Shown one piece after another: positions 3,001 to 62,729 of a stretch of 64,000 bases of DNA. The notes below the pieces were generated by a model, which saw only the letters and a program-made list of their open reading frames with translations, was not told where the DNA came from and made no database searches. The position numbers were made by a program, and so were the translations under genes. Where the stretch lies: assembly GCA_000708835.1 (NCBI GenBank), contig DF237246.1, positions 44,325-108,324 on the forward strand, written 5' to 3'. Positions within the stretch are counted from its first letter, which is position 1, and the number at the start of each line of letters is the position of its first letter. The DNA is from Klebsormidium nitens (Eukaryota; Plantae; Klebsormidiophyceae).

Positions 3001-6000
3001 CGCGTTCAATGATCTGCGGACGCTTGTCTTTGCGTGCAGGCGGACCGCGTGGAGATGATGGCCCGCGGCAGCGACGGCTCGTACATGAACGTCATGGTGG
3101 GCATCGAGAGCTGCCCGCTCAAGATCGAGACGACCAGGGTGAGGACGCACAGTCTCAACATACTTTGCTTTTGCAGGAGCGTAAAAAAGATGTGCATTGC
3201 AGGAACCTTGAAAAAGATGTGCTTTGCAGGAGCCTAAGAAACGTTGCGCTTTGCAGGAGCCTAAGAACAAATGCTCATTGGTGCTGGAAGATCGTGGCGA
3301 GAACGTCGTTATGCCATGTGCCCTCTTGTTTCTGTTCAAGGCGTCGTTTGGGAGCCAGATGGCTTCAGGTTCCGAAGCGACGTCTTGGAGTCGCTAGCAA
3401 GGCTGCTTTGAAAAAGATGCTTGAAAGCAACTTTCAAGTCAGCCTAGGATGTCTCTTTTGGTTCTTAATCCTCGTTTGAGCAGGGCTATTGTCTGCGTAA
3501 CAAATCCTCCCTATCTGTGCAGGTCATCATGTTGCAGCCGCACACGCTCCTCTCGAACCAATACGGCGATACGATCACGTTCCGGCAAGAGGGGACTGAC
3601 AAGGAGCTTAAGCTAGACGTCGAGGCCGCCGCCGTGCCGCTGATTTGGACGTCAACAGAACATCCCGAGCGGATGGAGGTTGGTCAATAAAACCCTCACG
3701 GCTGTACTAGGATCGAAACTCGACCAAGCTTCGTAGCTTTTCTTGGTCGAAACATCAAGGAAAGCCGGCGGATGTAGCGCGCATGATGTGCGTTTGCCAT
3801 ACTTGTTCGCCTCTTTTCCCGAAATTGGAGGTCACTGGTAGAGCGAGCGTGACGGTCATGGGTAGAGCGAGCGACTAGAATTCTCGTCAAAAACAGTTGG
3901 TACGGCGACATCTTTGGGACCCCCGGCTTTTTCATCAAGGAAGCGGTACTTGAAACTGAGCAGTGTCCCACTTGTTCATTCTCTCTTCTCGATCTCTTTG
4001 CAGTTTCTTCCTGAGTTCCCAAGAGTTGTAGTCGCTCCAGACGAACATGGGCACAAAGAACCGTTCAGCCAAAATGGAATTTAAAGCCAATTACGAATTT
4101 GGGTCCTTTTGCAGGTCCGGGTAGGCGACCTTCCCTGGAGTCGCCCCTTCCGCACTGACGAAGACGGCACGCTCACGGTTCTCATGGGCGACCTGACCCA
4201 CCCCCTGCTGCCGCGCCTTCTGCGCATCGAGATCCGCACTGTCTTAGAAGAAGCGCGTTTCCTGGTCACTTTCCGTCGCCCCCCGATTCACCCCCCCTAC
4301 CGCCTCGAGAACCGCTCGGGGAATTGCGTTCTGGAGTATCGTCAAGGGGGGTTGCCTGATGAGGCGCAATGGGCCGCGCTGGACCCCCACTCGGCGGCGG
4401 CGTTCGTTTGGCAAGATAAGGTGCAGGAGGAGAAGCGACTGGAGGTGCGGGCGCGCGTGGGGGGAGTACTGGGCGAGCCGCAGAGCTATGACCTGGAGCG
4501 GCTTGGGAGGCTGGACAGCCTGCCAGTGCCAGGTGCGTTGAAGTTGAAACCGTCCTTCTACTTTTTAGTCGTGTGTCTTTCGTAAATCGTTCCTGTGCTT
4601 CAATTGTGTCCTTTCGAATGCTGCTGTTTCCGTTCCGATAGCGCCAAAGAGCGATGGAGTCTTTCTGGGCTGCAATCTCACAGCCACCACCGAAATATGG
4701 TGAGACCTAGTTGCGAGCCGGTTCTTTCAAGCGACCAGAATGGCAAGCGCAGAACCCACTCTGGTGGACCCCTTAATTCTTCTTTAATATACACTATTCG
4801 CAGCGATGCTCATCTTCAAGAAGGAATACGAAAGAGACAGAGTCCTTTGCCAACGGCAAGTTTCGTACGGTGGTCTATCGGAACGACGCTCGTGCTTCTG
4901 TCTTCCCTTCGAATATCCAGGAAACGGAGGACAAGAAGGACTGACCTAGTTGCGCGTAAATTTTCAGGCAGTGGCACCGCCGGCGGTCCGCCCCAGCTGG
5001 AAGCGTTCCTCTACGTGGAAGGCCCGGAGCGTGTGCTGCGCTTTGTTGTCCCGGAAGGCGACCGCCAGGTGGTGACCCGCAACAGCGGCGCCGGGAAAGT
5101 AGGCGAGCTGGCCTCCGACTGGGTGGGGGCCACGCCGGAGGACTCGCTCGGAACCTCGCAGGTGAGCCATATGTTCAAGATCGAAAACCTTGAGTAGGTA
5201 AGCCAAACTCATTGTGAGAATTTGAGTGTTGAGCTTTTGGCTACGTGAATTGTCGGGGTCGTCGGATCCATGTAATTCTGTTCCTTCAAGTTTTGAAGAC
5301 TTTGGGACTGTGGGGTGGTAAATTTGTTGAGCTCACAAGGCTTCCGTTCCTCTGGCCTGAACTTCATTACTCCATTAGTATTGCTATAATACCAAGGTCT
5401 CTCGCTTCAGTGATGGGGGAGTGTTAGCCAGTAAGGAAGCTCACTTCAGTGATGCCTGGAAAAAACCTGTTTTGCCCCCAAACTGGACCCTACTTCGGAT
5501 TACTAACGTTCTTCTTTTTTGCCAAAGGCCTTGCACTATGTGAGCTTCTTCCCTTAGTTTAAGTGGAGAATGAGCTTCGTCAGCAACGTTCAAATGGCGC
5601 ATCTGCAATGGCGTTTTCTAAGCCGCAAACTTTATTTCTTTACCGGTATAGCATGACTCAGCCCCAAAATAGAATCGGGCTTCTCAAAAACCATATTTTG
5701 ACCCGCAGGCGAGCGCCCACTTGCTTGACGTCAGCGTGGACGTCCCGGAGCTGGGCCTGTCCGTGATCGACCACGTGCCCCAGGAGCTGCTGTACTGCCA
5801 CGTGGCAAGCCTGCAGCTGGGCTATACCACAGGGCTCGGGAAGGGCGTTACACGCACGCGGCTGCAGCTGCGCCACTTCCAGGTCAGTATCTTTCAGTTT
5901 AGGATCTTTTGCAGTTCCGCTCAGCAGATAGTCGAGTTTGAGCCTTTTAAAAGCTTCTGAGATCAAGGAGGCCATAGAAAGATGATTTGGCCATGGTATC

Positions 6001-16000: not shown

Positions 16001-19000
16001 GCCTTTTGAGCGCAACGGATCCAGTGGCAGTGGTCGCCCTCTTGAAGGAGCTGGGCGCCAGCAAGAAGCTCAACACCATAATCGAGGGGGAGTCGCTCAT
16101 CAACGACGGGTAAGTCCCAGGCGTGGTTGGGTTATTCTGGATGTGGGCCACACCACGTGATCGAATAAAAAGGAAACTTCGAGAACTTTAGGAATGTTAC
16201 TCAGTACCGTTAAATTTGGACCTCTTCGTGACCCGAAACGTGAATCAGGGTCCTGCAGGCAGACGAAGGGCACACTGCCACCTCATTCACAGAAGCACGG
16301 TCCAATACAGATCTGCGAAGTGACAGACATTTGTGAGCACAAACAAGCTCAGAACTCATTTTAAGCCAAGACCAGCATACACCCAATTCCAATCCAAACC
16401 CAGTTTAATCCGGCCAAGTTTGCTTGGGAACATTCCCAATTAGGAGATGAGAAAGTGCTTCTTAGAACAGGTTCTTTGGGCGCCCCGGCTTTGTATCACG
16501 CGTGACGTACATAAGATTGCGCACGGCGGTCAGGGTTGAGTTTCAATGAACGCTGATTGGCGGACGAGATTTGAATTCTCGGCAGCGCTTCGTGAAGCAA
16601 GCATCTTTCTTGCCCGCAGCACGGCGATCGTCGTCTTTCGCCTCTTCTACCGGATCGTCTTCGGCAGCAAGTTCAACTTCGTCAACACAATCGTCTATTT
16701 TATGCAGATCTCCTTTGGAGGGTGAGTCCAGGGACGGGAAACGCATGTTCTACGCTTAAATGATGTAGCGGCATTACAAATGTGGAGCGGCCCGTGTCTG
16801 TATCATTGAGGATAAGCAAGACGCCGTTTCGGAGCGGATTTCAGGGGCCATTTTGCTGAATGCGGACTTTTCTTGCATACGACGTCAGCCCCGCCCCAAC
16901 TTCTCTTCTCTCGTGTTTTCAAAGCCAGTGCTTATCATTCTGCGAGAATCATGACAGTGGCTTGAAACGCGATGGATTCCAAACTCGAAACGTTGTGCGA
17001 TCGGTCGGTCCTCTCCCCGGCTTTTCCGGTCACACCTTCACCTCGTGCGATTTCCTCCTGCAAACTCTAACCCCCGAGCTGAGTTACCGCCACCTCCAGT
17101 CTTAGGCTTGCCTGAGCTCATCTTCGATTTTGTAGTGACATCGTGCTGCTTTTACAATGTCGCCGGTCTGAGTCTATTCTTGCTCTGTAAAGTGGCAAGC
17201 AATGAAAATAATTATCCTGGAGCCAACTGTCGCGTTAATCCCACCGGTCTGAGTCCACTCCTGCCCTGCAGAGTGGCAATGGGCATCGCCTTTGGGCTGG
17301 TCGCCATAATGTGGCTCGGTTTCGTGTTCAACGACACTCTCATCGAAATCACCATCACGGTCTCGGCCGCGTATATGGTCTACTTCACGGTGAGCTGACA
17401 CGTGGCCCCAGCCGTCCGATTTGACACGCTGCAAATCAGCATCGAGAAACTTGATTCTGGTTGTCATCCGTTTGACATTGTTGAGAAACCTCGTCAAGCA
17501 GATTCGTCAATGCAGTTCGCTCATATGTGCATCTGGTTCCTCAAACGGAAATTGGGGCTTCCAAGTTTTCACCTTGCAAGCGGCTTCGAAAGCGAACGTG
17601 AAGCGGATTTGCTCCTGATAGCCAAAGAAAAACCTTCACATCAACCTTCACGACCAATATTGCGACGGGATCCTATCCTTCGAATACTCTAAACTGACGT
17701 GACTTAAATTGCCATGACGCCCGCCCTTTTTGACAACACAACTATTTCGTTAAAGTTTTCAAGAGTCGTTTTTGCGCAAGGCATTTTAAGTTTTCAAGAG
17801 TCGTTTTGTGCAAGGCACGCTAAGAGGAATGCCAACTGCAGATTCTGCTCGATCCACGGTGGAAGGACGAGGATCTTGTTTCGACCCATGTCAAGACCGG
17901 TGTGCTCAAAGAATCAGACCGCTGTCTTACAAGACCCTGGTTTCGCAGATCGCAAGTTGGTTTGCTTCTTAGTTCTTAATCGAACTGTCGGAATCTTAGT
18001 AAGACGGACCTGCATCGTTGCCATATCTGGGCTGTTCTTTTCAGGGTTCCTCACACTCGACATCGCTCTGTCTTGTCTGCAGTCGGAGCAGAATGCGGGT
18101 GTCTCTGGCGTCATCGGCGTTATGTTCCTTGGAATGTGAGTTCCGCTTTCGTAGCCCTTTCGGTTTGGGGCCTTTCGCTGAAAAGTCTAGTGCATCAACA
18201 CAAATGTCAGGTGATGTTCGGGAAAGGAATTATGCCTCTGGCTAAAATGGAGGCCTTTCGAGTAAATGAATATGACGGATCAGTGCCGGCAGGGCGTTCT
18301 TGATGAGAGGAGATAACCTTTGTATGATCGTATCGAAACGATTGAAATCTCAGATTCTTACTAGCGAGAATAGCTAGTCTGGCCGTTTGATCCAGGTTTC
18401 CATTCGTGCGGCATGGTCTGCGAAGTCCTCTCAAGGCCGTGCTCGAATCGGCCTTTCGCGGGAAGAAGCCTCCTGCTTATCCTCCTATCTTGTACCTTAG
18501 AGGAACTTTTGCATTAAGCTGTTGACGAGTTATTCCCCACGAGTTTCTCCTCATTCCAAACTCGGCACGGCCTTTCATAAGCCTCTCGGCTTCGGCTCTA
18601 TTTCGCAGATTCTTTGCCGCGGTCGGCAACACGGCGTTCACGGGAGAGCACAAGAAGAGCTTGCACCACTTCTGGGAGATGGTCGCGTACATGGCTAACA
18701 CGCTCATATTCATCCTCAGGTCCGTACAAAAAAAGTAATTTCGGCCTAGTTGCAGGTTTACCCAAATGCTATCTTTGCCCCAATTGGAGTGAAATCCTGT
18801 CAATCTGCAAAAGCAGGTGAAATATAAGGTGCAATGAGTATCAAGGAGATCCCCTTGCGCCGCAGTGTCAGTTGCAAGTTATGTTAGACCCAGTTTGATA
18901 CCCATTCAGCCCGGATTACAGTCTTTTGCTCGTGTTGGGTGCGTGCAGTGGGGTCATCATTGCTGAGGTCATCCTGCGCAACACGGAGAGCATCGACGCG

Positions 19001-22000: not shown

Positions 22001-25000
22001 AAAGGCGAGACCGAGGAGCCGAGCGATCCCTTTGGTCCGGTCATCAGCGATGAGACGACCGAGATGCACCGCATGCGGCTGCGAGATGTGCGCGCGCGTT
22101 TCCTCCGAGGTGACGGAAAGCTCTACGTCTCTGAGGAACGGAATGCCGACAATAACTCGATTCGATTTACGAAACCTGTGAAACTTCAAGAGGTTGTAAG
22201 ACTTCTTCTCTGGCATATAGTTTAAGGTGTGGGCAAATGTCGTCATTGAGTCTCTGTGCCGGTAGAAGTTTCTCGGATCCTCTTCCCAAGCGTTTGCAAT
22301 CCTGAAAACGTGCCCTCTTTCAAAATGTGCACCTAGAAGCTTACGGAAAGATCCAGTCGCAAAATGCTATTAAAGGGTGCCGAGCGAGTGCCTCTGTATA
22401 CGGGTTCTCGTCTCTTATACATCAGGCGAACCTCGCATCCGAGCTCCAGGCACTTATATTTCTTATCTATTTAATGAGGGCGTCCGATGAAGCAAGGCAA
22501 ACTTTCTTTGGGAATCCAGGTGGAGGTGGCTAGCGTGCTCAACCCTTATATGAAACTCGACGGTTCGAAACTCGGCCTCAGCATTTATTTCTGATCTGCT
22601 GGATCCCGCAGCGCCCCGGTTTCCATAGTCATACCGATTGTCAAAATCCAACGTCACAAAGCAGAATGCTACCAACGATCAGATTTCACATGAAGAAAAC
22701 GACTTCGAGAAGGACGAGTCCTTTGACGCCCTAGTCACGGCGTGCTAGCTCCTTCAACAGAAACCCAACTAGCAGAGACATCGGTACAAGTTTTCTCTTT
22801 GCATCAGTTCAGTTGCCTAAGAACCACGGAGCACTTCCCCCAAGTTCTGGGTTGGCCATCTTCTGAGCTGAACACTGCTGCGAAGATACCCGAGACTCCC
22901 GAACATGTTGAGGCCGCCGTCTGGGGCAAATCCGGGCAAAATGGCAAATCGAACTTGACCAGACTACGTTCCAGACGCATCCTCAGTCAGATTAACCACG
23001 CTCCAACCAACCCACTAACCTTGTGACTCCCGCGGCCCCCCGCAGGCGTCCAGGCGGCCTACTGGGACCAGCTCGACGAGGGTCGCCTGTCCCAAGTCGA
23101 AACGCGCATCCTCATCGAATCCATCGAATGCGGCTTAGACTCGGACACCGAGTTGTGCGACTGGGCGGAACTGCGGCCATACGTGCAAGTGCCCCCCTGG
23201 CTGCGCTTCCTGCAGTCGATCCAGCACAACAACTCGTACGTGAACGCGTTGGTTAAACGGCTGGTGGTGGGCAGTTTGGAGCAGGCGTGTGCGCTCGCGG
23301 CGGGGTATCTGCGCGCGCACCACAGGGCAAGGTGCGCCGATTTGCAGAGTTCACAGAGATGAGAAAACAAAGTGTCAATGTCCCAAATGCCGCTGAAACT
23401 GTAATAAACAGCGCATCCTTTTTTGCGCGACCAAGCTATCGGAAGTACCAAGCTTTCCAAAACGGTGCTGATCGAGGTGCGCTCGTCCCTATGTCGTTCA
23501 CTATTGTAGATAGAACGCCCAGCAAGCCGTAAGCCAGAACTGCAAACGCGGACGAAAACGGTGCAGCGGATCTGATCCAAACGCGGAGAGTAGGATTTGG
23601 AAGGCGCGCGGAGCATTCCGTTTCTAGTTTTCTCCAACGAATCATTCGCCCGTCTCAGGCAAGGAGCCGAGACGAAAGCCGCCGTCACGAACTTTTGTCC
23701 TGCCACGAACATTCTTTGGCGCCTTACAGGGAGCAGCTGTGATGAACTTTCGTCCTGTTTCAGAACATTCGTTTGCGCGTTATAGGGAGCAGCTGAAGCA
23801 CTTCCTCCACGACGATGAGCTGGCAGCCGAGGTGATCAAGGAGAGCGCGTGGTTCTCGAAGGAGCCGCACATGTTCCTCGAGGAGGTGGCGCACACCTTT
23901 CCTCAAGTGCTGACAACGGTGAAGACGCGTCAGGTGGCGTTCCACGTGCTTGGCGATGTAAGCTCCTCCTCAGCGACAAGTTCTTTAACGACGCTTTTAA
24001 TCATTCAAATGGCGGAGTGCACTCATTTGTAATGATGGGTGCTTGTGGGAATCGACGGTTTTCAAAGAAAGCTCTGAGCGGATTCTGACAGGCAGGTCGC
24101 CTTGCGGGCTCTTTTTGAGTGTGGATTTCGAGAGGAATGTGTGCCGATTACGAGCGGAATGAGTGGGTCGAGAGCCAAATTATAGGGTATGAAGGCTCAA
24201 AAACCCGCTCTCGCCGTTTTTCTGTTGCATATTTGACCCCGTCCTTACCCTCTTTGGTTGACGGTTCTTTTCTTGTTTTCTTCTATTTCAAACTTGCAGC
24301 ACCTTGTCTCTCCTTCGCTTTTTTTGGAAATTTTCCAGTACTTGGAGCATGCATCTTGACTTTCTCCTCACCTTTTTCTTGCTCAATCTCCATGAACGCT
24401 ACCAGACGTTATGCAGGGCTTCTCTGACGCTCCATTAGATTTCTAGGCTGAAATAGGTTCCGGAATAATCTCTGGAAAACAACGAAGATTATATTACATA
24501 TGTGAGTATTGTTATTTTGTATTTTGATGTATCATTTTTTATCCTTATAGATTCTTAAACAATCAAAATTCTACCCTCCAGCTCATGTCGTACATCGAGG
24601 ACCTGGACACCGCGGGCCTCGTTGACTCCAAGGAGATCGAGCGGCTCCAGAACGTCATCCGATTGGACCTCAAGAAGCTGAAACGCGCGCCGCGGCTGAT
24701 CCGCCCCCAGCAGCCAACCGGCCTGCTGCAGAGCACTCCCCTGGGGAGCCACGTGCCCCCCCAGTTTGAAACAATGGTGCGGAAGGACGGAGAAGAGCGC
24801 ACTTTCCCCAAGGGAGCGCCGGTCTACCGGGAGGGCTCCGAGGGCAACGAGGTGTTCGTCGTTGCGAGCGGGCACGTCAAGGTGGGTGGTTTGCAAGGGG
24901 TGTAAGATCGTTTGGTTTGGGACTTCCTCTGTTTGCGCCGTTGTTCAAGGTGGGCGGTTTGTGAAGGGTTTGCATTGTTTTGTGGGGGCCGATTAAATGT

Positions 25001-30016: not shown

Positions 30017-30165
30017 AGCCCATCGCGTCTTCGCTAGGCTGAGCACACGAGCCCATCGCGGTGTCTGTGCTGGCCCCTGGGCTTCAAGAGCTTAAGCACG
30101 AGAGCCCATTGCGTCTGTGCTGGGGCTTAAAAGCTTAAGCACGAGAGCCCATTGTGTCTGTGCTG
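30017..30165 (+). repeat. Tandem repeat with ~43-nt unit (2 near-perfect plus 2 degenerate copies), each carrying AGCCCA (site II, TGGGCY, on the minus strand)
   Basis: AGCTTAAGCACGAGAGCCCATTG(C/T)GTCTGTGCTG at 30089 and 30132; partial AGCCCATCGCG copies at 30017 and 30050. Confidence 0.85.
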
Positions 30166-46400: not shown

Positions 46401-49400
46401 TGTTGCTCCGCGTCGTCTGGTAGTTGGCCCACACCGAGTGAAGCACCGCATCGGGGCTACGACCACCCCCGAACCGCCACAGCGTCTGTGAAGGAAGATG
46501 GGATAGGTTGGAGCTCTTTCCAGATGACTGTTGTATGGCCTGACTCCAGCGTCTGTACAGGATGATCTGCCGTTCGGGCACTCTACCACGACTCACCATA
46601 TTCAGCGCAAAAGTTCTACGAAAACAGAGAAAAGTGGAAGATTTGAAAGGCAACTGTCTCCGGTCCGACTCGCAGGCGTGCTGCCTTGGTAAGATCAACA
46701 GAGCTTAGGCACGTCTGACGGACGGGTACCCGTTCGTGTTGCGGCTTGCAGGATTGAATAGACATGTTTCCAAGCGGGCAGGCTCGCAGATACAGAGTGC
46801 AAACAGGCAGACCTTATCTGTGTGTAAGAGTGCATCAAAGACACTGGCTTCCATTTCGGCGAACTCGGCGAGCCGCTCCGCAGCGGGCACGTTCCCGCCG
46901 CGCTTAATCAACGAAACAAAGCAAGCCTTGAAAAGTACGCATAGCACTTCATAAACACAACATATCCGCAGCCCACTTCGGCAAACTCCGGGAGCAGCTC
47001 CGCGGCCGGCGCCTTCTCGTCGCACGCGTTCCACACGAGCGACAGCTGGACCTTGGCGCGCGGATAGCGTTCGCCGACGGGAATGGCCGTGTCGTGCTGG
47101 GTCGTCACCACCGCCTGGATGTACCGCAACTCGCCCTCGCCCGTCTCCTCGTCGTACGGCATAATCTGGAGCTTGACCATGACGTCTTTCACGAGGTCGA
47201 CCGCCGCGTTGATGGCCGGGTGGTGGGCCCTGATCATATGACGAGCAAAAACGAGTATTGGGTTTCGGATCTCGAAGAGAATTTGGAAGTATCTTCATCG
47301 TATGGCACTATCTGGAGCTTGACCATACCGTCTCTCACGAGGTCGACGGCGGCGTTGATGGCCGGGTGGTGTGCCCTGGACGAGTGTCAGACAGACCAGG
47401 ATTTGAGCACTTGAGAAAGGTTTTAGGAGGCAATCTCGGGGAGAGCGTATCTTCATCGTGCGGCAAAAGCTGGAGCTTGACCATGACGTCCTTGACGAGG
47501 TCGACCGCTGCGTCGATGGCCGGGTTGTGGGCTCTGATCACGTAACGAGCAAGAACATGTATTTAGATTCAAATTCAGAGAATATGAGGAAGCAAGAGTC
47601 TCCTCGTCGTACGGCATGATCTGGAGCTTGACCATGACGTCTTTGACGAGATCGACAGCGGCATTTCTGGCCGGGTGGTGCCCTGGACGGGTTTCAGAAA
47701 AAGCAGGATGTGAGCACTTGAGAAAGGTTTCAGGAGGCACATTTCAGGGAGAGCGTATCCTCATCATACGGCAAAAGCTGGAGCTTGACCATGATTTCGT
47801 TGCAAGGTCAACGGCAGCATTGATGGCCGGGTGGTGGCCCCTGATAACTTGATGAGTAGAGAAGAGATAACATTGTGAGCAGTTGCAGGCAATGACAGGA
47901 ACCAAAATTTCTGACGACCGACTCTTCGCCGTGAGGCATGATCAGGAGGACCATGACACCTTTCGCGAGGTCGACAGCGGCGTTGACGGCCGGGTGGTGC
48001 GCCCTGGATAGGTTTGCTACATTTATAACTTTAGCGGTTGAGGTTTTCGGAAGGCATTTTGGGGACACCGTTTACTCGTTGAGCGGCATGATTTGCGAAC
48101 TTGACAATCATTGCTTTGACGAAGTCAACGCGGCATTGCTTGGATTGAATCCTGATCAGTGTGCGCTTTGTAATGACTGAAGCGGGGCACTTGATTAGTA
48201 CAAGTGTTCTCATTGTTCTGCGGGTTTTCGGGGTCTGACCATGAGTTCTTAACGAAGTTGACAATGGCATTGTGCGGCAGGAATCTGGAGGGTGGAGGTG
48301 AGAGTGTTCGTACGCTTCTGAGCCCCTTCTGAGACCAGCGCCACAACTATGCCTATTGGCAGAAAGGAGCCACAGCTCAACCAAGCAAACATAATCGGGT
48401 GTAGATTCCAAAGCCCAAGCACAATCCGTCAACTTTAGTATGGACGGGTGCACTCACCGGCAGTTTGGTATGTCCGTGACTGCGTGACTGCCCTCCTGAT
48501 ACAGCCCAATCTGCGGGTTTCCGACCGTGCCCCGGACAGCCAGCCGGGCGCGACACCGCCACCCCCACTGCGCATTAGCATCACAAAAACCGGTTCACTC
48601 GATATACCAGGCAGAATGCGCTCCTTCAGCTCTTGTTCTGCCATCTCTTCCTGGAATCGTGTTGCGCCACTCGCTTCCGCGAGTTCACTCAACCTATCAG
48701 AGATGCAATTCTTTATTCTCGAGAAAGGTTGGCGCAAAGGACTCTTCTGAGTGCAACAAAACAAGTGAACTACCGTCGTACTTTTTGTTCACGCTGCGTC
48801 TTCTGACATGTGTCCCACGTCCAGCAGTAGCAACTTACAATGTCCCCAGTGTCGAGCTGAAACTCCCGCACTCCATGCCGCCCGAAGAACCGAGTAGCAT
48901 CGGTTAGGACAGGGGGCTTGTCAAGACCGATGTCTAGGACACAGCCAGAACACCTGCAGAACAACAACGCCGGTCGGTGATTTGAGATTATGTTTTCTTT
49001 TCTTCAAATGGACAGCATCGCCCGTCATGCGCTCTGGAAAGACGCCTCATCAAAGCTCCTAAGCGAATCTACCCTGTATGCAGTGCATTTTTAAGGTTAG
49101 CGGTTGCTCTTGCCGCTCTGTAGTGCTCCTCAAGGAGCGACTGTCTCGTCTGTCCAAAGAAAAGTAGCTTCGGATGGTGAACAGGATGCAGGACATCGTC
49201 TTAACAGGTCACGGACCTATGTACAGTACTTGAATCTGCTTCTGATGAGCGAAAGAACATCATAAGGATGCCCTCACCTTTCGAAGTGCTGACAGTCAAG
49301 CACAGTGTTCGCCGGAGCTGCCCCGCTCGGGCCGTCTCTGATTGCGTCCTCGACCTTAGATTCTTTCTCCCCAGACTGCACCACCCCCTCATCATTTGAC

Positions 49401-51204: not shown

Positions 51205-54200
51205 ATGGACTCAGCGCAGCAGAGTCCAGTTCTCCCCGCTTGTTGCTTTGCCCCTGCCGCTTGGAAGGGCGTCCTTTCGAGCAAGCGAGCAAACCAGGTC
51301 GCCCCTGCTGAGATGGTTGCCTTAGAAAGTGAATCTGGCGCATCTCTTCCAAGCCAGGGTGCAGGTAAAGCATTCCAAAGTGCTGAAAATCATGGTTTGG
51401 AAAGGGTGGAGACGCCCCCAACAAGGGTGGGGGTGCATACAAAGCAGATTGTAGGAAGGGAGGGTGTTTTAGCAGGAAAAGGTGGCCCCTGCCGGTTGAC
51501 AGTTGAGATCAGAGAAAGGGGCGATGGGCTATCCCCAGAGAGGCCCCATTCAGGATTGTCATCAAGTCCGTCCAGCACAGAATGTGAGCCAATTCCTGCA
51601 GGCACACCTCTCTGGAACGCTCTGTTGCACCAGAGCCCCAGTAGGGAGCCCATTAGAACTTCCCACGCCGAAAAGTTGGATACCACAGCTGGTTACGTTG
51701 GCGGAGGAGAACCGGGGGAGTCTCCTTTGAAGCAGCTGTCAACAGTTGGCAGGGCGAGCGTGGTTGTCACGAGTGTCCCCAGCAAACTGAGCATCTCTGT
51801 GCCATTGGACCAGCACGCAGCCGCTGTGCACATTTGTACTGCTTCAGAGAGCAAGTCAGGGGGTCCTAGTGCCGGTGTCATGAGCTGGGGGGGGGTGGCA
51901 AGCTGCCTGCAGTGCTCAGCGTCGGCCGGGGCGCTTGACGCCATGCGAAAGTACTGGGAGCAGGCAGAGCAGAGGGCGAGGGAGGCGGAGGTGGCAGCAA
52001 CAAGGATGGGGAGGAATGAGGAGCGGTTGATGGCACAGCTGGCGTTGCTCCTGAAACAGGTGGGTGCTGGTTTGACACTGGTTCTTGTGGTGGGGTTTGT
52101 GTGGTTTTGTCTGCTTTGCTGGTTTGCGGACTTTCTGCTGTGATGAGCACTTTGAGCGCCATCCCAAATTTCTTTTCCTGATTCCAGCATGTTCTATGAA
52201 CTGCAGTGCAGACTCAGCAATTCAACAATTGGACTTGAGCAAGAGCAGAGGGGCAAACCAGGTGGATTGTGTCCCCAATGGTTTCATCATATTTCAGCCG
52301 GTTGACCATGTCTCAGCTTCTCAGCTACGTTTGTGGATGAATGTCTTTTCAGTTTTGCAGTCCGTTATATACAATGGTTGATTAAGTCAGGTTTGACTTG
52401 GTCATCAACTCCTGGATCGCTCGTCCTTGAGAATTGTACAAGGACCCTATGACTGATTAGGGGCACAATGTGTCAGCGCACATGGACATTTGTGTGCATT
52501 CTTTTCTGAGTCTCAGAGATCTCGCTGATGCTTCTTTTCTCAGTTGTCTGTAACGAACTTGGCATATGGAGAGAGTCATACTTTGTGCTGGGCTCGAAGA
52601 GGGATTTGTGGGGGAAAAAACAAGGTAACCAGTGAGTGTTTCAACAGTTCTGCTCATTTTAGTTTTATTCGAATGGAAGGAAATCATAAACGTCCAACAT
52701 CATGTAGCCATTCCAGTCGAGGTTGCAGGGGCGGCAGAGAAAGCAGTGACAAGCTCTGAAGCTTCTGGGTCTCGTTGATAAGAGACACAAGCAGATTCCC
52801 ACCAACTTCTGTTGTGTGAGCTTCTGAGCAACTTCGCTTTTTCCAGATTGAGCTGCGGCAGGTCCAGGTGGAGCACCTCTCGGGCCTTGTCGCGCAGCAG
52901 CAGGCGGCGTTCCTGGCCCTGGATGGGCGCTACTTGGAGCGCCTCCGCAGAGAACAGGGCCTCCCAGAGGAGCCCGCCACGTCACCCTCCCCAGAAGCCG
53001 TCAGAGGAGGGCAGTTCAAGCAGCCGGTGGGAAGAGAAGTCAGTCAAGAGGGTATCTTTTCGGAGGGACAGCTACAGGTGGAGCATTACACATCGAAAGA
53101 ACAAGGAAAGGCAATTGGGAGGGAGACAAAAGAGGAGTTGGCGACGGGTCAGAGCTCGCACCAGCATGATGTCAGCGAAGGGGCGGGTGGCGAGGCTAAG
53201 GTGAAGCGGCTTCACAGGGGGGCCTCGCTGGATGCCTGGGCGGAGCCAAGAGACGTTAGCGACATGGATGGCGATGCGGGGCCTTGTTGCGGAGATAGCG
53301 AGAGCGGGGCTGATTCTAGCTTCGAGTTTGATACGAGCCCGCTGGCCGTTTTGAGCGCCAGTTCCCCTGAGGCGGAAAGCGAGGGGGGCTCGCCAGGCAT
53401 CCGGCGAAAGCGGAGGGGACAAAGAAAGGAGGTGGAAGTAATCGTCGAAGAGATGGTCGACGCGTGCGCAGGCCTCGAGTCAGCGCAAGGTGGGTTTGGC
53501 GAGTTCTTTGTGTCGCCGAATGTGCCGGAGAGCCCGCTCAAGAGGAGGATTAGGGATGGAGATAAGCGGTCCTGTGATAGCCCCGTTGAGAGTGAGCGGG
53601 ATTCAGGCAGCCCGCCTGGCGAGGGCGTGGGTGCAGGGCGGAAGCCGGGGCCTGAGGGATCAACAGAGGCGAGGTCGTCTGAGCGAGAAGTAACTGAACA
53701 AAGTGGTTTTGGTGGGTCGGAGGACGCGGTTTTGAAGTCGGGAGAGGGTGACGGGTTTGATCAGCAAGAGAGTGCTGTTGAGGGAGATGCGGGAGCGGTG
53801 GAAGAGCAATGCGTGGAGGTACTGCAGGGGGAGGTTGGAGTCCCGGAGTTCTTACGAGTCAAGCAGGATAAACTCAGCAGCAGCGAGGCGGAAGGCAGAA
53901 GTAATGGGAGCACAATGGGGGTGGGAAGTGCTAGGGTCGCTTTCGTTTTGGGAGATGGTGTAGGGCAGCAAAAGGCCTGGGGCGGGGGGGAAGCAAAACG
54001 GGAAGAGAAGGAGAGCGGGAGCGAAGAAATGGAGGAGTTTCTGGGGCTGGCAACGGAGGAGAAACACATGGGATATGGAGTCGAAGAGCAACTGCAAGGA
54101 AGCGCACCGCCTGAGTTGACAGAGGTGGGCAGTTTAAACAACCTGGGTCAAGGAACAGGGAGAGAAGTGACCGTGGAAGGGGCTGAAGCTTCGTTCCAGT

Positions 54201-55333
54201 TGGGCTATGCCGAGTTGGCGCGGGCAAGCAGTTATGACGAGAAAGCGCTCCGGAGCAGTTGGCCCGTCACTGCTGCCGGAGCTCCTCAGATCCGCACAAT
54301 GAACGGGCGATGGGTCGAAGGGGAGGGGGCGGAAAACATCCCGAGCGACGGACGGATCCCCGAGCAGAACGGACGCGCATATACTGTTGACGGGAGGTCC
54401 GGATCTGGCGCTTGGGGCATGGTGCCACTTGAAATCGCGCAGGAGGTGGTAGTTGAGGGTTTCGGTGAGGAGGACTTTGACGGTTGGCGGCACGGAAGCG
54501 TCAGCGAGTCCAGGTCCGCCTCGCGCACGAGCGCCGATACTTTCAGCCCGGAGCCGCCGCTGATGGAGAGCTCGGGGGGGGCGTCGAGGACTGACGGCTT
54601 TGCAGAGCGGTCTAGCCCCCAGGGACGGCAGGGCGCCTGGCGGGGATCCCCTAAGCTGGTTCCGTGTAGCCCCCAAGGGCCGCGCTCAAAACCGCCCTCT
54701 CCTCGGGTCGTGTCGCCCAAGACCGGTGTGCCTACGCCTCCGGTGAACCCCCGGGGGCCTTCTCCCTCCAGCCCCCACTTTGCGAGCGCACACGAAGTGT
54801 CAAGGAAAATGGTCGGGACCGTGGCAAGCGGTCGAAGGGTTGGGTCGCAGGGCGACTTCGGGGCTGCCGCCCACCGATTGGACACGCGAGCGGGGAGGCT
54901 TTTCAGAAGAGACAGCCTGCCGAGAAGAAACAACACCTCGGATCCGTTCGGGCTCCAAGAAGCGGCTCTCGTCCCGCATCCGCCGGCCGTGGCGGCTCCG
55001 GCTAGAAAGCCGTCGACACGGGAGAAGCACTTGGCGGCGAGCGTGGGTGGCAGGCAGAGCAGCGATAAGGAGAACGACCTGCCGAAGGTGCCAACGGTCA
55101 CGCTTCGGTTGGAGGGTTTGGGGTTCAATCGGAAGACCGGGGGAGACTTCGAGAATGGAAGGAGGGTAGGGTCAGACTTGATGCAGACGTCTGGGTTGGA
55201 GTTGGGAACGGAATGGGGTTCAAGTGCGAGTGATGTACATAGTAGTGACGTAGCCGCCCCGGAACCTCCTGCGAAGCCACGGACGACATCCTCCCGGCCA
55301 CAGTTCCGGGCACTTCGTCCAATGGCAAGCTAG
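51205..55333 (+). CDS. Uncharacterised ~1113-aa low-complexity (S/G/E/P-rich) protein with a central coiled coil
   Basis: Exons 51205-52059 (CAG|GTGGGT) and 52847-55333 (TTCCAG|ATT) join in frame. Heptad-like segment LDAMRKYWEQAEQRAREAE...LLKQIELRQVQVEHLSGLVAQQQAAFLALDGRYLERLRREQ spans the intron. No other domain recognised. Confidence 0.75.
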
Positions 55334-60458: not shown

Positions 60459-62729
60459 TCAGGACTTTGAGCCTCGAGACCCCAGGTCGAGGTTGATACC
60501 TAAGAATCCGCACAGAACCAACGTGCCGCCAACCAGCATCAGAGGCTTTGGAACGATTCCAAAGATGAGAAGCTCGGCAAGTATAGCAATCGGTGTTTGA
60601 ACCGCCAGGCCCACGCTTGCTGCGGTTGGGGTTGTTAGCAGCATAGCCCTTGCACACAGGTAATCAGCGACAACGTTTCCGAATATACCTGCATTAGAAA
60701 GAACATTGGACGACTTTAGGCAGGAGCGACTTTTGTGTTTGTGGCCAGGGAGCCAACTTGAAGCAATCTGACCCTGTGAAAAACTCGTGCAGATTGCCAA
60801 AGCCTTGCTGAATGAACAGGAACTTTGACAACAGACAAAGACCCCGCCGTCTTGAAAGACACACCGGTGATGCTGACCTTCCAAAAACGGACCGAGAAGA
60901 GTACTTCTGCTTGGGGAAAACGGGACAATTTCCTCACCTTTGACGATCAAGAGCCCGAACGTTTTTGCCCCCATCCAACGCAGGTTCTCCAACCCGGTCC
61001 ATGCAAGCAGCAACAGGCACGGCAGCAAAAACACACCGGCGAGCAGACCCATATACCCAAACACCAGGGACGTGCTGACCGGCTTCTTGCCCCGCTTGCT
61101 AGGACAGCTGTCAAGATCCTCCCCGGTTTCGTCTGGCATCGTGTATTCGACACTAGTGCCATAGAAGGCGTAGATTATGGCCGCCACAAAGGCAAGTCCG
61201 TTGCCTAAGGCAGGCCCAGAAGGGATCGAAAGGGAGCCGTCCGACTCAGAAGACGACTCCACGTCCGAGATGCTGACGACCACTGTTCCCAGCATGGCGC
61301 AAACGATCATGGCGAGCTTGAAGATCGTGAACGGCTCCTTCAGCCAGATGACCGAGATCAGGAAAGTAAAGAGGCTCGTGGAAGAGAATATGATCGTGTT
61401 ACTCTGCACCCAAACAGGAGGAGATATGTACTAAGTCAGTAGCAGATAAAGACGTCCCAACCCTGGTGGAACAAGGGCAGTTAGCGAGCCTTCGCTCTTC
61501 CAAAGATTGGCAGTTAGTGAGCCTCCGCTCTTCCAAAGCTGTGAAGAACGTAAGATCTACAGTAGCAAAAGTACCGCTGATGGCTCTTGCTGTATGAACT
61601 GCAAGCAGACCCTCCACCAAGAAGATGCACGTCCTGCAAACAATGGACAAGCAAATAGAGGGAACAATAGAAAGTCAAGGGGAAATGCGAAGTTACGTCC
61701 ACTCCGAGGAATCTGATTGGAAGAAGTACTCACAGACACGGTGGTCAGGCCCAGGGACAAGGTATATGTGTACTGTGCCATAAACCACAGCGGACCAATC
61801 ACGGCCGCAATCTTCACAGCCTCCCAATGCTCCGCACCTAAGGGCCCCAGCCTCAGGCCCCTGAGCGAACCCTGGTATGCGCTCACAACCGGTTCGGTGC
61901 TGTCCAATGCATCATCCTGCGCTTCTACATCGGGCAGTAACGGGGCCTGCCCCTGGCTGTCAAGTCCCCAGGACTTCTGAGGTTGAAATCCCAGCTCCGG
62001 AAGGCTCTGAAGTTCTGCTCCATCCTGCCTACCTAAGGTTTCTTCCGCCATCGACTTGCTGCCGATTGGAGTGCTGAACAAGGTCCTGACTGCAGCGACA
62101 TTGACGGGGCCCCCATGGGCCGTTAACTCAATTAACTTGCTTGGAGAAGCGGGCGCCTTCCAAGCTTCTAAGACGGACAGTATCGGTGTCTGCGGTTCAG
62201 ACACGCTCCTACTACCCACGTCCCCGGAACTTTCTTCCGGGCCCAAGAGGGCAAATGGCAGTGCGGCCCCTACATGGGGGTGCACTTCTCTCTCACTTCC
62301 TACCCGCCTCTCATCAATCGCCGCCGCTTCCAACTGGAGGCCTCCCGCACTTTCCTGAAGCCCTCTACTCCAATTACACCCATTTGCCTCCCCGTCCTCA
62401 ACTACCGAAGCCAGTTTTCTCCATTGGCTAGGGCTCCCTGCCCCTGGAGAATCCCCACCATCTGAGCTTTTCTCTTTGCGCGAAAGCTCCCAAAAGCCAG
62501 CGTTATGCCCCTGCCGGTACCAGCGGGCGAGCATGGCACAGGGGAGGTGCAGAATGAACAGGCATGATGAGACGTATGACACCAGGAAGGACGACGCGCC
62601 CCTCTCTATGATCACCTGAATGGCGAACCCCGCAGAAATATACAGGAGCCCTGCCACTATCACTAGGCCCAGGCCAAGGGCCTGCCGTCCCTGGGGCAGT
62701 CTGCCAAGCGGGAAGGCACCTTCCGCCAT
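60459..62729 (-). CDS. EamA/DMT-superfamily transporter, SLC35F5/THI74-like, ~563 aa
   Basis: Exons 62729-61734, 61403-60938, 60688-60459 are in phase. Hydrophobic helices; motifs IGPLWFMAQYTYTLSLGLTTVSSNTIIFSSTSLFTF, GNGLAFVAAIIYAFY, GNVVADYLCARAMLLTTPTAASVGLAVQTPIA. Upstream minus-strand splice signals (acceptors 62764 and 63414, donor GTAAGT ~63944) suggest a spliced 5' leader. Confidence 0.9.
61476..61540 (+). repeat. 33-nt tandem duplication in EamA intron 1
   Basis: GGCAGTTAG(C/T)GAGCCT(T/C)CGCTCTTCCAAAG occurs twice. Confidence 0.92.

Follow-up and report, generated by a model that had tools for sequence, protein, structure and literature searches.

Tandem copies of the intron 4/exon 5 junction occupy most of intron 4 in a probable RNA methyltransferase gene of Klebsormidium nitens

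In a 64-kb window of Klebsormidium nitens DNA, the whole stretch that we analysed, intron 4 of a minus-strand gene was found to contain seven copies of its own 3' junction (c2 to c8), each consisting of about 60 nt of intron tail, a CAG and ~87 nt from the start of exon 5. We consider it likely that serial tandem duplication across the intron 4/exon 5 junction produced this array, which would be nearly neutral and minisatellite-like. Its role as a regulatory device is not demonstrated.

The host gene is, judged from its translation, a probable TrmA/RumA-type m5U RNA methyltransferase. The translation carries the motifs CxxxxxCxxC, VTELYAGAGAIG and DPPRKG, and the exon 9 piece matched two PDB entries, 2jjq (annotated as an uncharacterized RNA methyltransferase of Pyrococcus abyssi; E 3.5e-4) and 8z62 (23S rRNA (uracil-C5)-methyltransferase; E 0.032). 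Pfam PF05958 reached only E 0.17 with a piecewise exon query rather than the whole spliced protein, and nothing significant was found in Pfam when the exons were submitted one by one. Exon 4 (48458..48567, minus strand) is delimited by RNA joints at 48567/48839 and 47228(+1)/48457 and by its translation, which ends in IGLYQEGSHAVTDIPNC at phase 2; its donor GT lies at 48457-48456. Intron 4 (47230..48457, minus strand, 1228 nt, GT..AG) corresponds to an RNA joint that skips 1228 nt, read as CT..AC (cut +1), in runs X1, X3, X9, X10 and X21, and these joints bear out the limits and the gene model given in the preliminary description. Exon 5 (46977..47229, minus strand, 253 nt) was placed by RNA joints, AG anchoring and translation, and its working acceptor reads ..TGATCAG|G. 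The array takes up about 1070 nt of the 1228-nt intron.

All units lie on the minus strand. Counting the real junction as c1, the first base after the AG falls at 47229 (real exon), 47375, 47533, 47682, 47840, 48003, 48151 and 48284, with AG spacings of 146, 158, 149, 158, 163, 148 and 133 nt; the unit lengths are not multiples of 3. The head of c1 (47143-47229) is the only one continuous with the remaining exon 5. Units c2 (47289..47445; head 47289-47375; AG 47377-47376) and c3 (47447..47594; head 47447-47533; AG 47535-47534) both retain an open frame, the former with a type B upstream spacer (GTCCAG) and the latter with a type A spacer (GATCAG) homologous to that of c1. Unit c4 (47598..47752; head 47598-47682; AG 47684-47683) has a type B spacer 86% identical to that of c2, and a 2-nt deletion adjoining its AG shifts the frame. 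In c5 (47755..47915; head 47755-47840; AG 47842-47841, TATCAG), whose head groups with that of c3, the frame is shifted by a 1-nt deletion. Unit c6 (47920..48063; head 47920-48003; AG 48005-48004, ATCCAG) shows an in-frame 3-nt deletion and a weak pyrimidine tract. The head of c7 (48070..48196; head about 48070-48151; AG 48153-48152, GATCAG) is decayed by several indels and frameshifted, and c8 (48200..48286; head about 48200-48284; AG 48286-48285, CTCCAG) is a remnant. Head identities to the real exon, from c2 to c8, are 0.85, 0.86, 0.90, 0.83, 0.84, 0.71 and 0.58. The frameshifts in copies 4, 5 and 7 had already been recognized from the sequence, as had the first six spacings, all of which match; the earlier count was six copies and a seventh remnant, and AG anchoring adds the 133-nt spacing and with it a very decayed eighth unit. 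The proposed growth of divergence away from the real exon holds beyond c6 but not for the nearer units, whose identities range from 0.83 to 0.90.

The array has a higher-order organisation. A repeat search returned direct-repeat families of 5-7 members across 47129-48130, and among the five arrays that TRF reported in the window this one is much the strongest (period 304, 2.3 copies, 80% matches, score 873). By self-BLAST, identity was 76% at offset 304 vs 69% at offset 146, and 71% at offset 612 vs 68% at offset 455, so that similarity at the multimer period exceeds that at the monomer period, in support of the ~305-320 nt dimer proposed earlier. The acceptor flanks alternate over all eight units (GATCAG, GTCCAG, GATCAG, GTCCAG, TATCAG, ATCCAG, GATCAG and CTCCAG). 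Alternation had been claimed for the spacers as well, and here it is solid for the four youngest units, the last two dimers, only: local alignment scores were 50 for c2-c4 and 23 for c1-c3 against a shuffle 99th percentile of 10.5, with the other pairs at the null level.

Diverged versions of the array occupy the same junction in two related lineages, L003 and L005. The L003 array has seven units, of which one is truncated, one has a 9-nt deletion and one lacks the AG; L005 has at least one upstream copy. In L001, L002 and L004 the intron has a TTTGCAG acceptor and no copies, and its length is 810-834 nt as measured in L001 and L002. In a tree, all copies group with both real exons in a single clade apart from the outgroup exons (support 99/99), and the tree of heads is a star with c1 at its centre on a branch of length 0. 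One-to-one orthology between K. nitens and L003 units (the latter denoted d) is not supported, given the star tree and the loosely matching spacers (c2-d1 20, c2-d3 16, c3-d1 15, c4-d3 15). The diverged arrays in two lineages and the absence in a more distant clade therefore indicate that the array is derived and turns over fast. The working flank of L003, GTGTCCAG, has features in common with both K. nitens acceptor types; the working acceptor may have 'hopped' between unit types.

We propose that a segment of ~150 nt, comprising the end of the intron (roughly 60 nt), the AG and the start of the exon (about 87 nt), would have been duplicated by replication slippage, unequal exchange or end-joining. 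As the last copy alone is continuous with the rest of exon 5, it alone would yield a working mRNA and the upstream copies would become intron. Later events would have copied one or two units each, the clearest being a ~305 nt duplication from [c2 c1] to [c4 c3][c2 c1], and older units would have been pushed towards the donor, decaying there. The upstream AGs would be passed over because no definable exon with a donor follows them, and their products, being out of frame, would probably be removed by NMD. The codon-like skew among the copies would be mainly inherited, each copy being a snapshot of an exon that changes at silent sites only, followed by even decay. Among the options raised in the preliminary description, a snapshot of junction amplification is the one that fits the evidence.

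A broader process may lie behind the array. Local tandem duplications in the window carry splice acceptors more often than expected of untargeted duplication, which hints that their origin or retention is non-random. It is conceivable, and we hold it as a tentative idea, that the array is one product of a process active throughout the K. nitens clade and preferentially duplicating junction-spanning segments, mostly acceptors and often ~150 nt (nucleosome-sized); introns would thereby lengthen through 'echoing' of their own ends, and the role of real acceptor could pass from one unit to another over time. On the donor side, intron 5 contains an echo (46851..46901, minus strand), in which the final ~45 nt of exon 5 and the donor position are repeated at ~78% identity to 46973-47023 by local alignment, with GT changed to AT; two donor-side copies of this type are found in L003.

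With respect to the window as a whole, no further copy of the array repeat was found in the 64 kb, and a dispersed repeat or mobile element was rejected, the copies being confined to a single locus within it. Three smaller junction echoes are also present in the window. In a check for non-coding RNA, Rfam gave no match to intron 4 at E up to 1; a plus-strand gene opposite the array was rejected, as only mechanical ORFs and no credible one are found there.

The substitutions among the copies bear on whether the heads, rather than simply decaying, are kept exon-like, either through gene conversion or unequal exchange involving exon 5 or through indirect selection, as exchange would import damaging changes. 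We regard this as unlikely, although a coding-like skew is real and of intermediate degree. Minimum changes among the K. nitens intronic copies number 9/8/26 at codon positions 1/2/3, and shared or multistate columns 3/0/13; third positions take 60% of the changes in K. nitens and 49% of those in L003 vs a uniform expectation of 33%, which speaks for this view. Private changes, however, are evenly spread, at 5/8/7 in the K. nitens and 4/6/9 in the L003 intronic copies, and frameshifts and deletions persist in c4, c5, c6, c7, d4 and d5. The skew in L003 lies within the snapshot bound (P 0.39), and the K. nitens excess goes slightly beyond what the snapshot model allows at its most generous (about 45%; P about 0.03). 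CpG hypermutability was rejected as the cause of the third-position skew, with CpG observed/expected at 0.94 in the intron, and a GC-to-AT decay bias was not supported, 10 of 20 private changes starting at A/T sites. Because the K. nitens excess exceeds the snapshot bound and no CpG depletion explains it, exchange with the exon to some degree, or indirect selection of a weak kind, may be at work as well.

Further observations speak on both sides of the exchange question. Compared with c1, c4 shows changes at 1/47 sites in its 3' half (1-2 sites) vs 9/40 in the 5' part, which favours exchange; yet the mosaics found by longest identical run and best split (c1-c4, P 0.005, and c2-c6, P 0.002, both uncorrected) do not survive correction for 15 pairs and many split points. 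Between K. nitens and L003, the identity of intronic heads reaches 89% (c4 to d5) vs about 66% for the upstream flank in its longest alignment, introns and exons together; copying from a conserved exon after the species split, however, also predicts high identity. Between c2 and c4, spacer identity (0.86) is about equal to head identity (0.83), which fits neutral decay. Run X21 comes from a relative diverged by ~7%, and of the four silent differences that separate c1 from its X21 orthologue, three are states still found in intronic copies; like the position of c1 at the centre of the star tree, this favours the snapshot model.

We next consider decoy-acceptor regulation, in which low or conditional use of upstream AGs would give out-of-frame mRNA removed by NMD and so tune methyltransferase output. 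K. nitens retains each of the seven intronic AGs intact, and every upstream choice would lead to a premature stop or loss of frame: on reading through from exon 4, a stop is reached within 50 codons at c2, c4, c5 and c7, and at c3, c6 and c8 the frame stays open across 50 codons, yet out of the exon 5 register. In addition, the pyrimidine fraction is 0.65-0.70 at acceptors c2-c5 vs 0.65 at the real site. By such crude measures, acceptors c2-c5 look as good as the real one, so that their silence is left unaccounted for, a point that counts against serial duplication with passive neglect of the upstream AGs. In the RNA contigs, however, the sole joint was the canonical 47229|48458, in five runs from five studies; these are contigs of steady-state RNA prepared without NMD inhibition, with a detection limit of roughly 1-2% use, so that rare or NMD-degraded isoforms could be missed. 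The assembly yielded contigs as shallow as ~2.6 in depth next to a canonical junction covered at 113-235, and none had an upstream AG joint. The depth over the body of intron 4 is 2-4% of exon depth, as in neighbouring introns 3 and 6, and shows no 3'-ward rise in the RNA contigs. The retention of every AG is not evidence of selection, because its chance under neutral decay is about 0.12 and because one AG is lost in L003. The AGs are not conserved across relatives: others in L003 are shifted, and the array is absent from the L001/L002/L004 clade despite the same gene and intron position. Collectively, these results leave the suggested unproductive-splicing rheostat unsupported, and we judge decoy regulation to be quite improbable.

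Downstream of the eight AGs, the next three bases read GGC, GGC, AGC, GGC, GGG, GGC, GAT and ATT. As no copy has AG|GT, and thus no regenerated donor, recursive splicing, the stepwise path considered earlier, is excluded by sequence. Nor is any c2-c5 head followed by a GT donor, as had been noticed at the outset.

Tandem exon duplication reportedly gives rise to mutually exclusive exons (work attributed to Kondrashov and Koonin, 2001, and to Letunic and colleagues, 2002). As in such clusters, the units here are tandem exon copies with their own acceptors in the upstream intron, and their substitutions are partly coding-like; they could thus be the relic of alternative exon '5a' variants whose donors were lost with a downstream intron. 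Unlike such exons, the copies represent only the first third of the exon, have broken frames in c4, c5 and c7 as well as no donors, and are included in no RNA. Moreover, exon 5 of the outgroup clade is single and continuous, with the same start and no extra intron, and all copies are younger than the outgroup split. A relic of this kind is therefore very improbable. That the array is an assembly artefact or a collapsed or expanded repeat, the refutation foreseen in the preliminary description and a general risk with tandem repeats, is scarcely credible, since units 10-40% different assemble unambiguously, an RNA contig (X1 record 5, 1220 nt, 47267-48486) and a DNA contig (X25 record 5, 10,298 nt) cover the array and are identical to it throughout, the RNA contig alone being independent support as the DNA contig possibly derives from the window's own source sample, and two other assemblies carry related arrays; DNA run X29, of the same species label, gave no match to this stretch.

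Intron creation or extension by tandem genomic duplication was reportedly treated by Gao and Lynch in 2009. That study is cited in PMC3443670, and Rogers' AGGT model of intron creation by tandem genomic duplication is discussed by Hellsten et al. (2011, PMC3265369). As there, a short intragenic duplication including splice signals is spliced out, leaving mRNA and protein unchanged. In the AGGT cases, however, a new intron arises from an exonic AGGT in a single event, whereas in K. nitens an existing intron was lengthened about seven times over at one junction and no new intron formed. Another parallel is described by Borensztajn et al. (2006, PMC1557585) for human F7 intron 7, where the first unit of a 37-bp VNTR spans the exon 7 donor, competent but silent pseudo-sites stand in a row and the site adjoining the exon body is chosen. 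Both arrays are head-to-tail, and in each the terminal unit includes the functional splice site together with a piece of the exon; the pseudo-sites here are likewise silent in normal RNA (contig limit ~1-2%). The F7 array differs in being donor-side, with near-identical 37-bp units of polymorphic copy number, whereas that of K. nitens is acceptor-side, with dimerically organised units of 133-163 nt that are 10-40% diverged and in which ~87 nt are coding; the chosen site is the last transcribed here and the first in F7. The ~305 nt dimer of two diverged monomers, itself amplified, also recalls the higher-order repeats of satellites and minisatellites, but this array is tiny, single-locus and intragenic, and one of its ends is anchored by sequence under purifying selection. 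The literature searched (Klebsormidium introns, tandem duplication, alternative splicing) held no description of such an architecture, and the main text of the Klebsormidium genome paper never mentions introns or repeats. The earlier impression of novelty thus stands within that literature; the principle, that silent pseudo-sites remain after a tandem duplication spanning a splice site, is known.

In summary, eight near-equivalent acceptors in a row, with the last alone used, constitute a natural experiment on 3' splice-site choice in a plant lineage and an acceptor counterpart to the human F7 donor model. Comparison across species indicates that the intron gained about 1 kb purely from copying its own junction, and, as the array is differently arranged in close relatives and absent in the sister clade, it offers a datable, stepwise record of intron growth. 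For annotators and molecular evolutionists there is a caution: copies of exon sequence that lie untranslated in an intron can pass for coding simply because the exon from which they derive was constrained. If junction copying is widespread in the genome, Klebsormidium intron expansion would be neither transposon-driven nor random. Should the clade-wide process be true, it would represent an undescribed mode of intron growth and would link 3' splice sites, or the chromatin positioned on exon starts, mechanistically to DNA breakage or repair.

The 3' splice site and head of exon 5 recur as an array in intron 4 of a minus-strand gene, whose model was rebuilt at this place from RNA joints and translation. 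TRF reported the array at 47142-47845 (period 304, 2.3 copies), and its score of 873 was the highest among the five TRF arrays in the 64 kb. A repeat search gave families with 5-7 members, 146-165 nt apart, at the same intron. Anchoring on the AG yielded eight units: c1, the real exon start at 47229, and seven intronic copies, c2-c8, numbered towards the donor, whose first bases after the AG on the minus strand are 47375, 47533, 47682, 47840, 48003, 48151 and 48284. The spacings from c1 to c8 were 146, 158, 149, 158, 163, 148 and 133 nt; the array of acceptor plus exon-head copies and the first six spacings agree with the preliminary description, and the seventh is an addition. Each unit is made up of about 45-75 nt of intron-like spacer up to the CAG, and then about 87 nt resembling codons 1-29 of exon 5. 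In the window self-comparison, the motif was found nowhere else.

The acceptor flanks, the 6-7 nt directly preceding the exon head, alternated strictly in 8/8 units between GATCAG/TATCAG and GTCCAG/ATCCAG/CTCCAG. Significant spacer homology was confined to two pairs, c2-c4 (score 50) and c1-c3 (score 23); for shuffled sequences the 99th percentile was 10.5. The alternation described earlier was therefore upheld for all flanks, and for spacers in these two pairs only. The dimeric unit proposed at the same time was supported by the TRF period and by self-BLAST, in which identity at the dimer period exceeded that at the monomer period. Given the spacer homology and the dimer-period identity, the best-documented event appears to be a single duplication of about 305 nt, [c2 c1] -> [c4 c3][c2 c1]. 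Alternation older than this event is left in the acceptor flanks only.

The array is real, and its structure is unusually clear. A 1220-nt contig (47267-48486) from RNA run X1 (2024) crossed the whole array and the exon 4 donor with zero differences, and is unspliced pre-mRNA. A 10.3-kb contig from DNA run X25, possibly the same sample as the window assembly, also matched the array exactly. With these matches the assembly artefact considered in the preliminary description was not borne out. The array locus was not found in the 328 Mb of contigs of DNA run X29, which carries a K. nitens label.

The host gene is probably a TrmA/RumA-type m5U RNA methyltransferase. Its translation contains a Cys cluster, CSGCVLD, in exon 3, ends exon 4 with ...IGLYQEGSHAVTDIPNC, begins exon 5 with (R)AHHPAINAAVDLVKDVMVKLQIMPYDEET, and carries VTELYAGAGAIG and DPPRKG motifs in later exons. 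A piece of exon 9 resembled PDB 2jjq (E 3.5e-4), a Pyrococcus abyssi entry with the annotation 'uncharacterized RNA methyltransferase', and PDB 8z62 (E 0.032), a 23S rRNA (uracil-C5)-methyltransferase; the match to Pfam PF05958 was weak because exons were searched one by one. An 821-aa ORF at 52868-55330 in the window shared 100% identity with the NCBI entry 'hypothetical protein KFL_002970120 [Klebsormidium nitens]', which assigns the window to this streptophyte green alga.

Across four RNA runs, each from a separate study, the sole joint at intron 4 was 47229|48458, which skips 1228 nt with GT..AG ends at a depth of 30-235. The junction was identical in a fifth run, X21, which is labelled K. 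nitens but is a diverged relative from a different lineage, because its exons at the locus are just ~93% identical. In the RNA contigs, the body of intron 4 had about 2-4% of exon depth, like introns 3 and 6, and showed no rise towards the 3' end. The array therefore causes no measurable delay in splicing and gives rise to no visible alternative products. Retention of intron 5 (46486-46976, minus strand) amounted to 14-30% of exon depth in each of four RNA runs, far above introns 3, 4 and 6 (2-5%). Where the exons reached depths of 165, 254, 30 and 113, the contig covering this intron (46456-47006, 551 nt) had 50, 34.5, 6.8 and 20; the donor of intron 5, GAA|GTGGGC, is weak.

On crude criteria, c2-c5 have acceptors as good as the real one, with pyrimidine fractions of 0.65-0.70 versus 0.65 for c1; the fraction falls to 0.45 in the weaker c6 and c7. 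Use of any upstream AG is predicted to be unproductive: at c2, c4, c5 or c7 a stop would follow within 50 codons, and at c3, c6 or c8 the frame would stay open across 50 codons but would not match that of exon 5, as each unit length leaves a remainder of 1 or 2 when divided by 3. NMD-coupled regulatory use of these AGs, the rheostat suggested in the preliminary description, is not supported, since the canonical joint stood alone in the five RNA runs. Because contigs down to a depth of about 2.6 were assembled, steady-state use of any upstream AG was at most 1-2% in the deepest run, a rough upper bound drawn from contigs, which prove the presence and not the absence of isoforms. Stepwise (recursive) splicing is excluded by the sequence, since a GT directly follows the AG in 0/8 units, and canonical recursive splicing at these AGs is thus impossible. 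The third option of the preliminary description, a snapshot of junction amplification, fits best, and we consider it probable that serial duplications of the junction left the array behind as an almost neutral record.

A search with the exon 5 translation brought up exon-sized ORFs in other assemblies, and the contigs that hold them were compared. L003 (Logan SRR23617307) matches K. nitens at 92% identity in exon 5, and its intron 4, 1291 nt long, holds six intronic copies, d2-d7; d2 and d7 are full-length with their AG, the AG is shifted in d3 and lost in d6, d4 is truncated, and d5 has a 9-nt deletion. L005 (ENA ERZ23872192, 583 nt) has the acceptor GTGATCAG, an upstream spacer closest to K. 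nitens c3 and, upstream of that, the end of a further head copy. Exons of L001 and L002 (JGI 3300060284, 3300060285) and L004 (Logan SRR14092358) are ~80% identical to those of K. nitens, and their acceptor is strong, TTTGCAG|A. No head copy was found in intron 4 of L001/L002 (810 or 834 nt), where local scores equalled the shuffle null; L004 covers just 134 nt upstream of exon 5. A 47-nt tandem duplication in L001 (3809-3905) lies wholly within intron 4; it stops 59 nt short of the acceptor and thus leaves out the junction. In the head tree, all copies and both array-bearing real exons formed one clade against the outgroup exons (support 99/99), with a star inside it and K. nitens c1 central at branch length 0. 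Given this single clade and the copy-free outgroup introns, the array arose after the split from L001/L002/L004. The locus persists in at least three lineages, with units gained, lost and damaged fast.

Minimum changes were counted at codon positions 1/2/3. The counts were 2/0/25 for real exons of five taxa (position 3 share 93%), 9/8/26 for K. nitens intronic copies c2-c6 (60%) and 13/8/20 for those of L003 (49%). The skew departed from uniformity (P 2e-4 in K. nitens, 0.03 in L003), and is real but intermediate. Changes private to one copy were even (5/8/7 in K. nitens, 4/6/9 in L003), the skew was confined to columns common to several copies (3/0/13), and 3/4 silent differences between c1 and its X21 orthologue (GTG/GTC, AAA/AAG, ATT/ATC) were states persisting in intronic copies. 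This is as expected if each copy were a snapshot of an exon drifting at silent sites alone, with even decay afterwards. Under such a model third positions can take up no more than about 45% of the changes, a limit that L003 fits (P 0.39) and K. nitens slightly exceeds (P 0.03). CpG hypermutability was ruled out as the source of the leftover skew (intron CpG observed/expected 0.94). A gene-conversion mosaic between c1 and c4 (9 differences in 40 columns versus 1 in 47, P 0.005 before correction) is suggestive at best, and some exchange of copies with the exon is possible. The substitution tests gave no evidence of translation or individual selection of intronic copies. Intronic AGs survive in 7/7 cases in K. 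nitens and one is lost in L003; the decay seen at codon positions 1 and 2 implies a neutral probability of ~0.12 for 7/7, and AG retention is not evidence of selection. The c1 spacer (47230-47287) is less like the orthologous L005 spacer (L005 52-112) than is its intronic paralogue, the c3 spacer (47534-47594), and c1-c3 divergence is twice that of c2-c4 (0.30 vs 0.14), though both pairs come from one duplication. Evolution may have been quicker in the region of the working acceptor.

Spliced-out tandem duplications that carry splice signals and leave the protein unchanged were reportedly described by Gao and Lynch in 2009. That such duplications can be spliced out in this way is documented (Hellsten et al. 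2011, PMC3265369; reviewed in PMC3443670). The nearest parallel on record is the minisatellite of human F7 intron 7, in which the first 37-bp unit covers the exon 7 donor and the array yields successive donors that are competent but silent (PMC1557585). In contrast to known systems, the K. nitens array is on the acceptor side, has eight units of ~150 nt in dimeric organisation with a third of an exon included, and has the last transcribed site as the chosen one; comparative data further show an array of this type being rebuilt in related species. Our literature search found no description of such an array in Klebsormidium or any other alga.

Sensitive self-comparison detected only seven local tandem duplications in the window, and three besides the intron 4 array have a YAG and an apparent exon start at a fixed place in each unit. 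On the plus strand, 3170-3280 looks like a small acceptor-plus-exon-start array of four 27-nt units, each from TTGCAG|GAGCC, the last continuing into the open frame EPKNKCSLVLEDRG. Two acceptor-like copies at 17156-17279 (plus strand, offset 81 nt) read ..CCGGTCTGAGTC..CTG(T/C)A(A)AG|(AG)TGGCAA..., the second continuing into a membrane-protein-like open frame, VAMGIAFGLVAI. The 55-nt tandem duplication at 23677-23795 (plus strand) comprises a pyrimidine tract, YAG and GGAGCAGCTG, a sequence that would fit a putative acceptor of a SOS1-like gene. Further short tandem duplications lie at 30077-30165 (43 nt, 2-3 copies) and 61476-61538 (33 nt, 2 copies). On the donor side, intron 5 of K. nitens holds one echo of the exon 5 tail (46851-46901, ~78% identical, GT changed to AT), and that of L003 holds two copies of tail plus donor (L003 4378-4421 and 4526-4571; offsets 161 and 311 nt); with the acceptor-side array, both edges of exon 5 are thus echoed in the clade. 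That 4/7 duplications span a putative acceptor would be more than expected from untargeted duplication, the count being small. One possibility is that introns throughout the K. nitens genome are built by a duplication process anchored at splice junctions.
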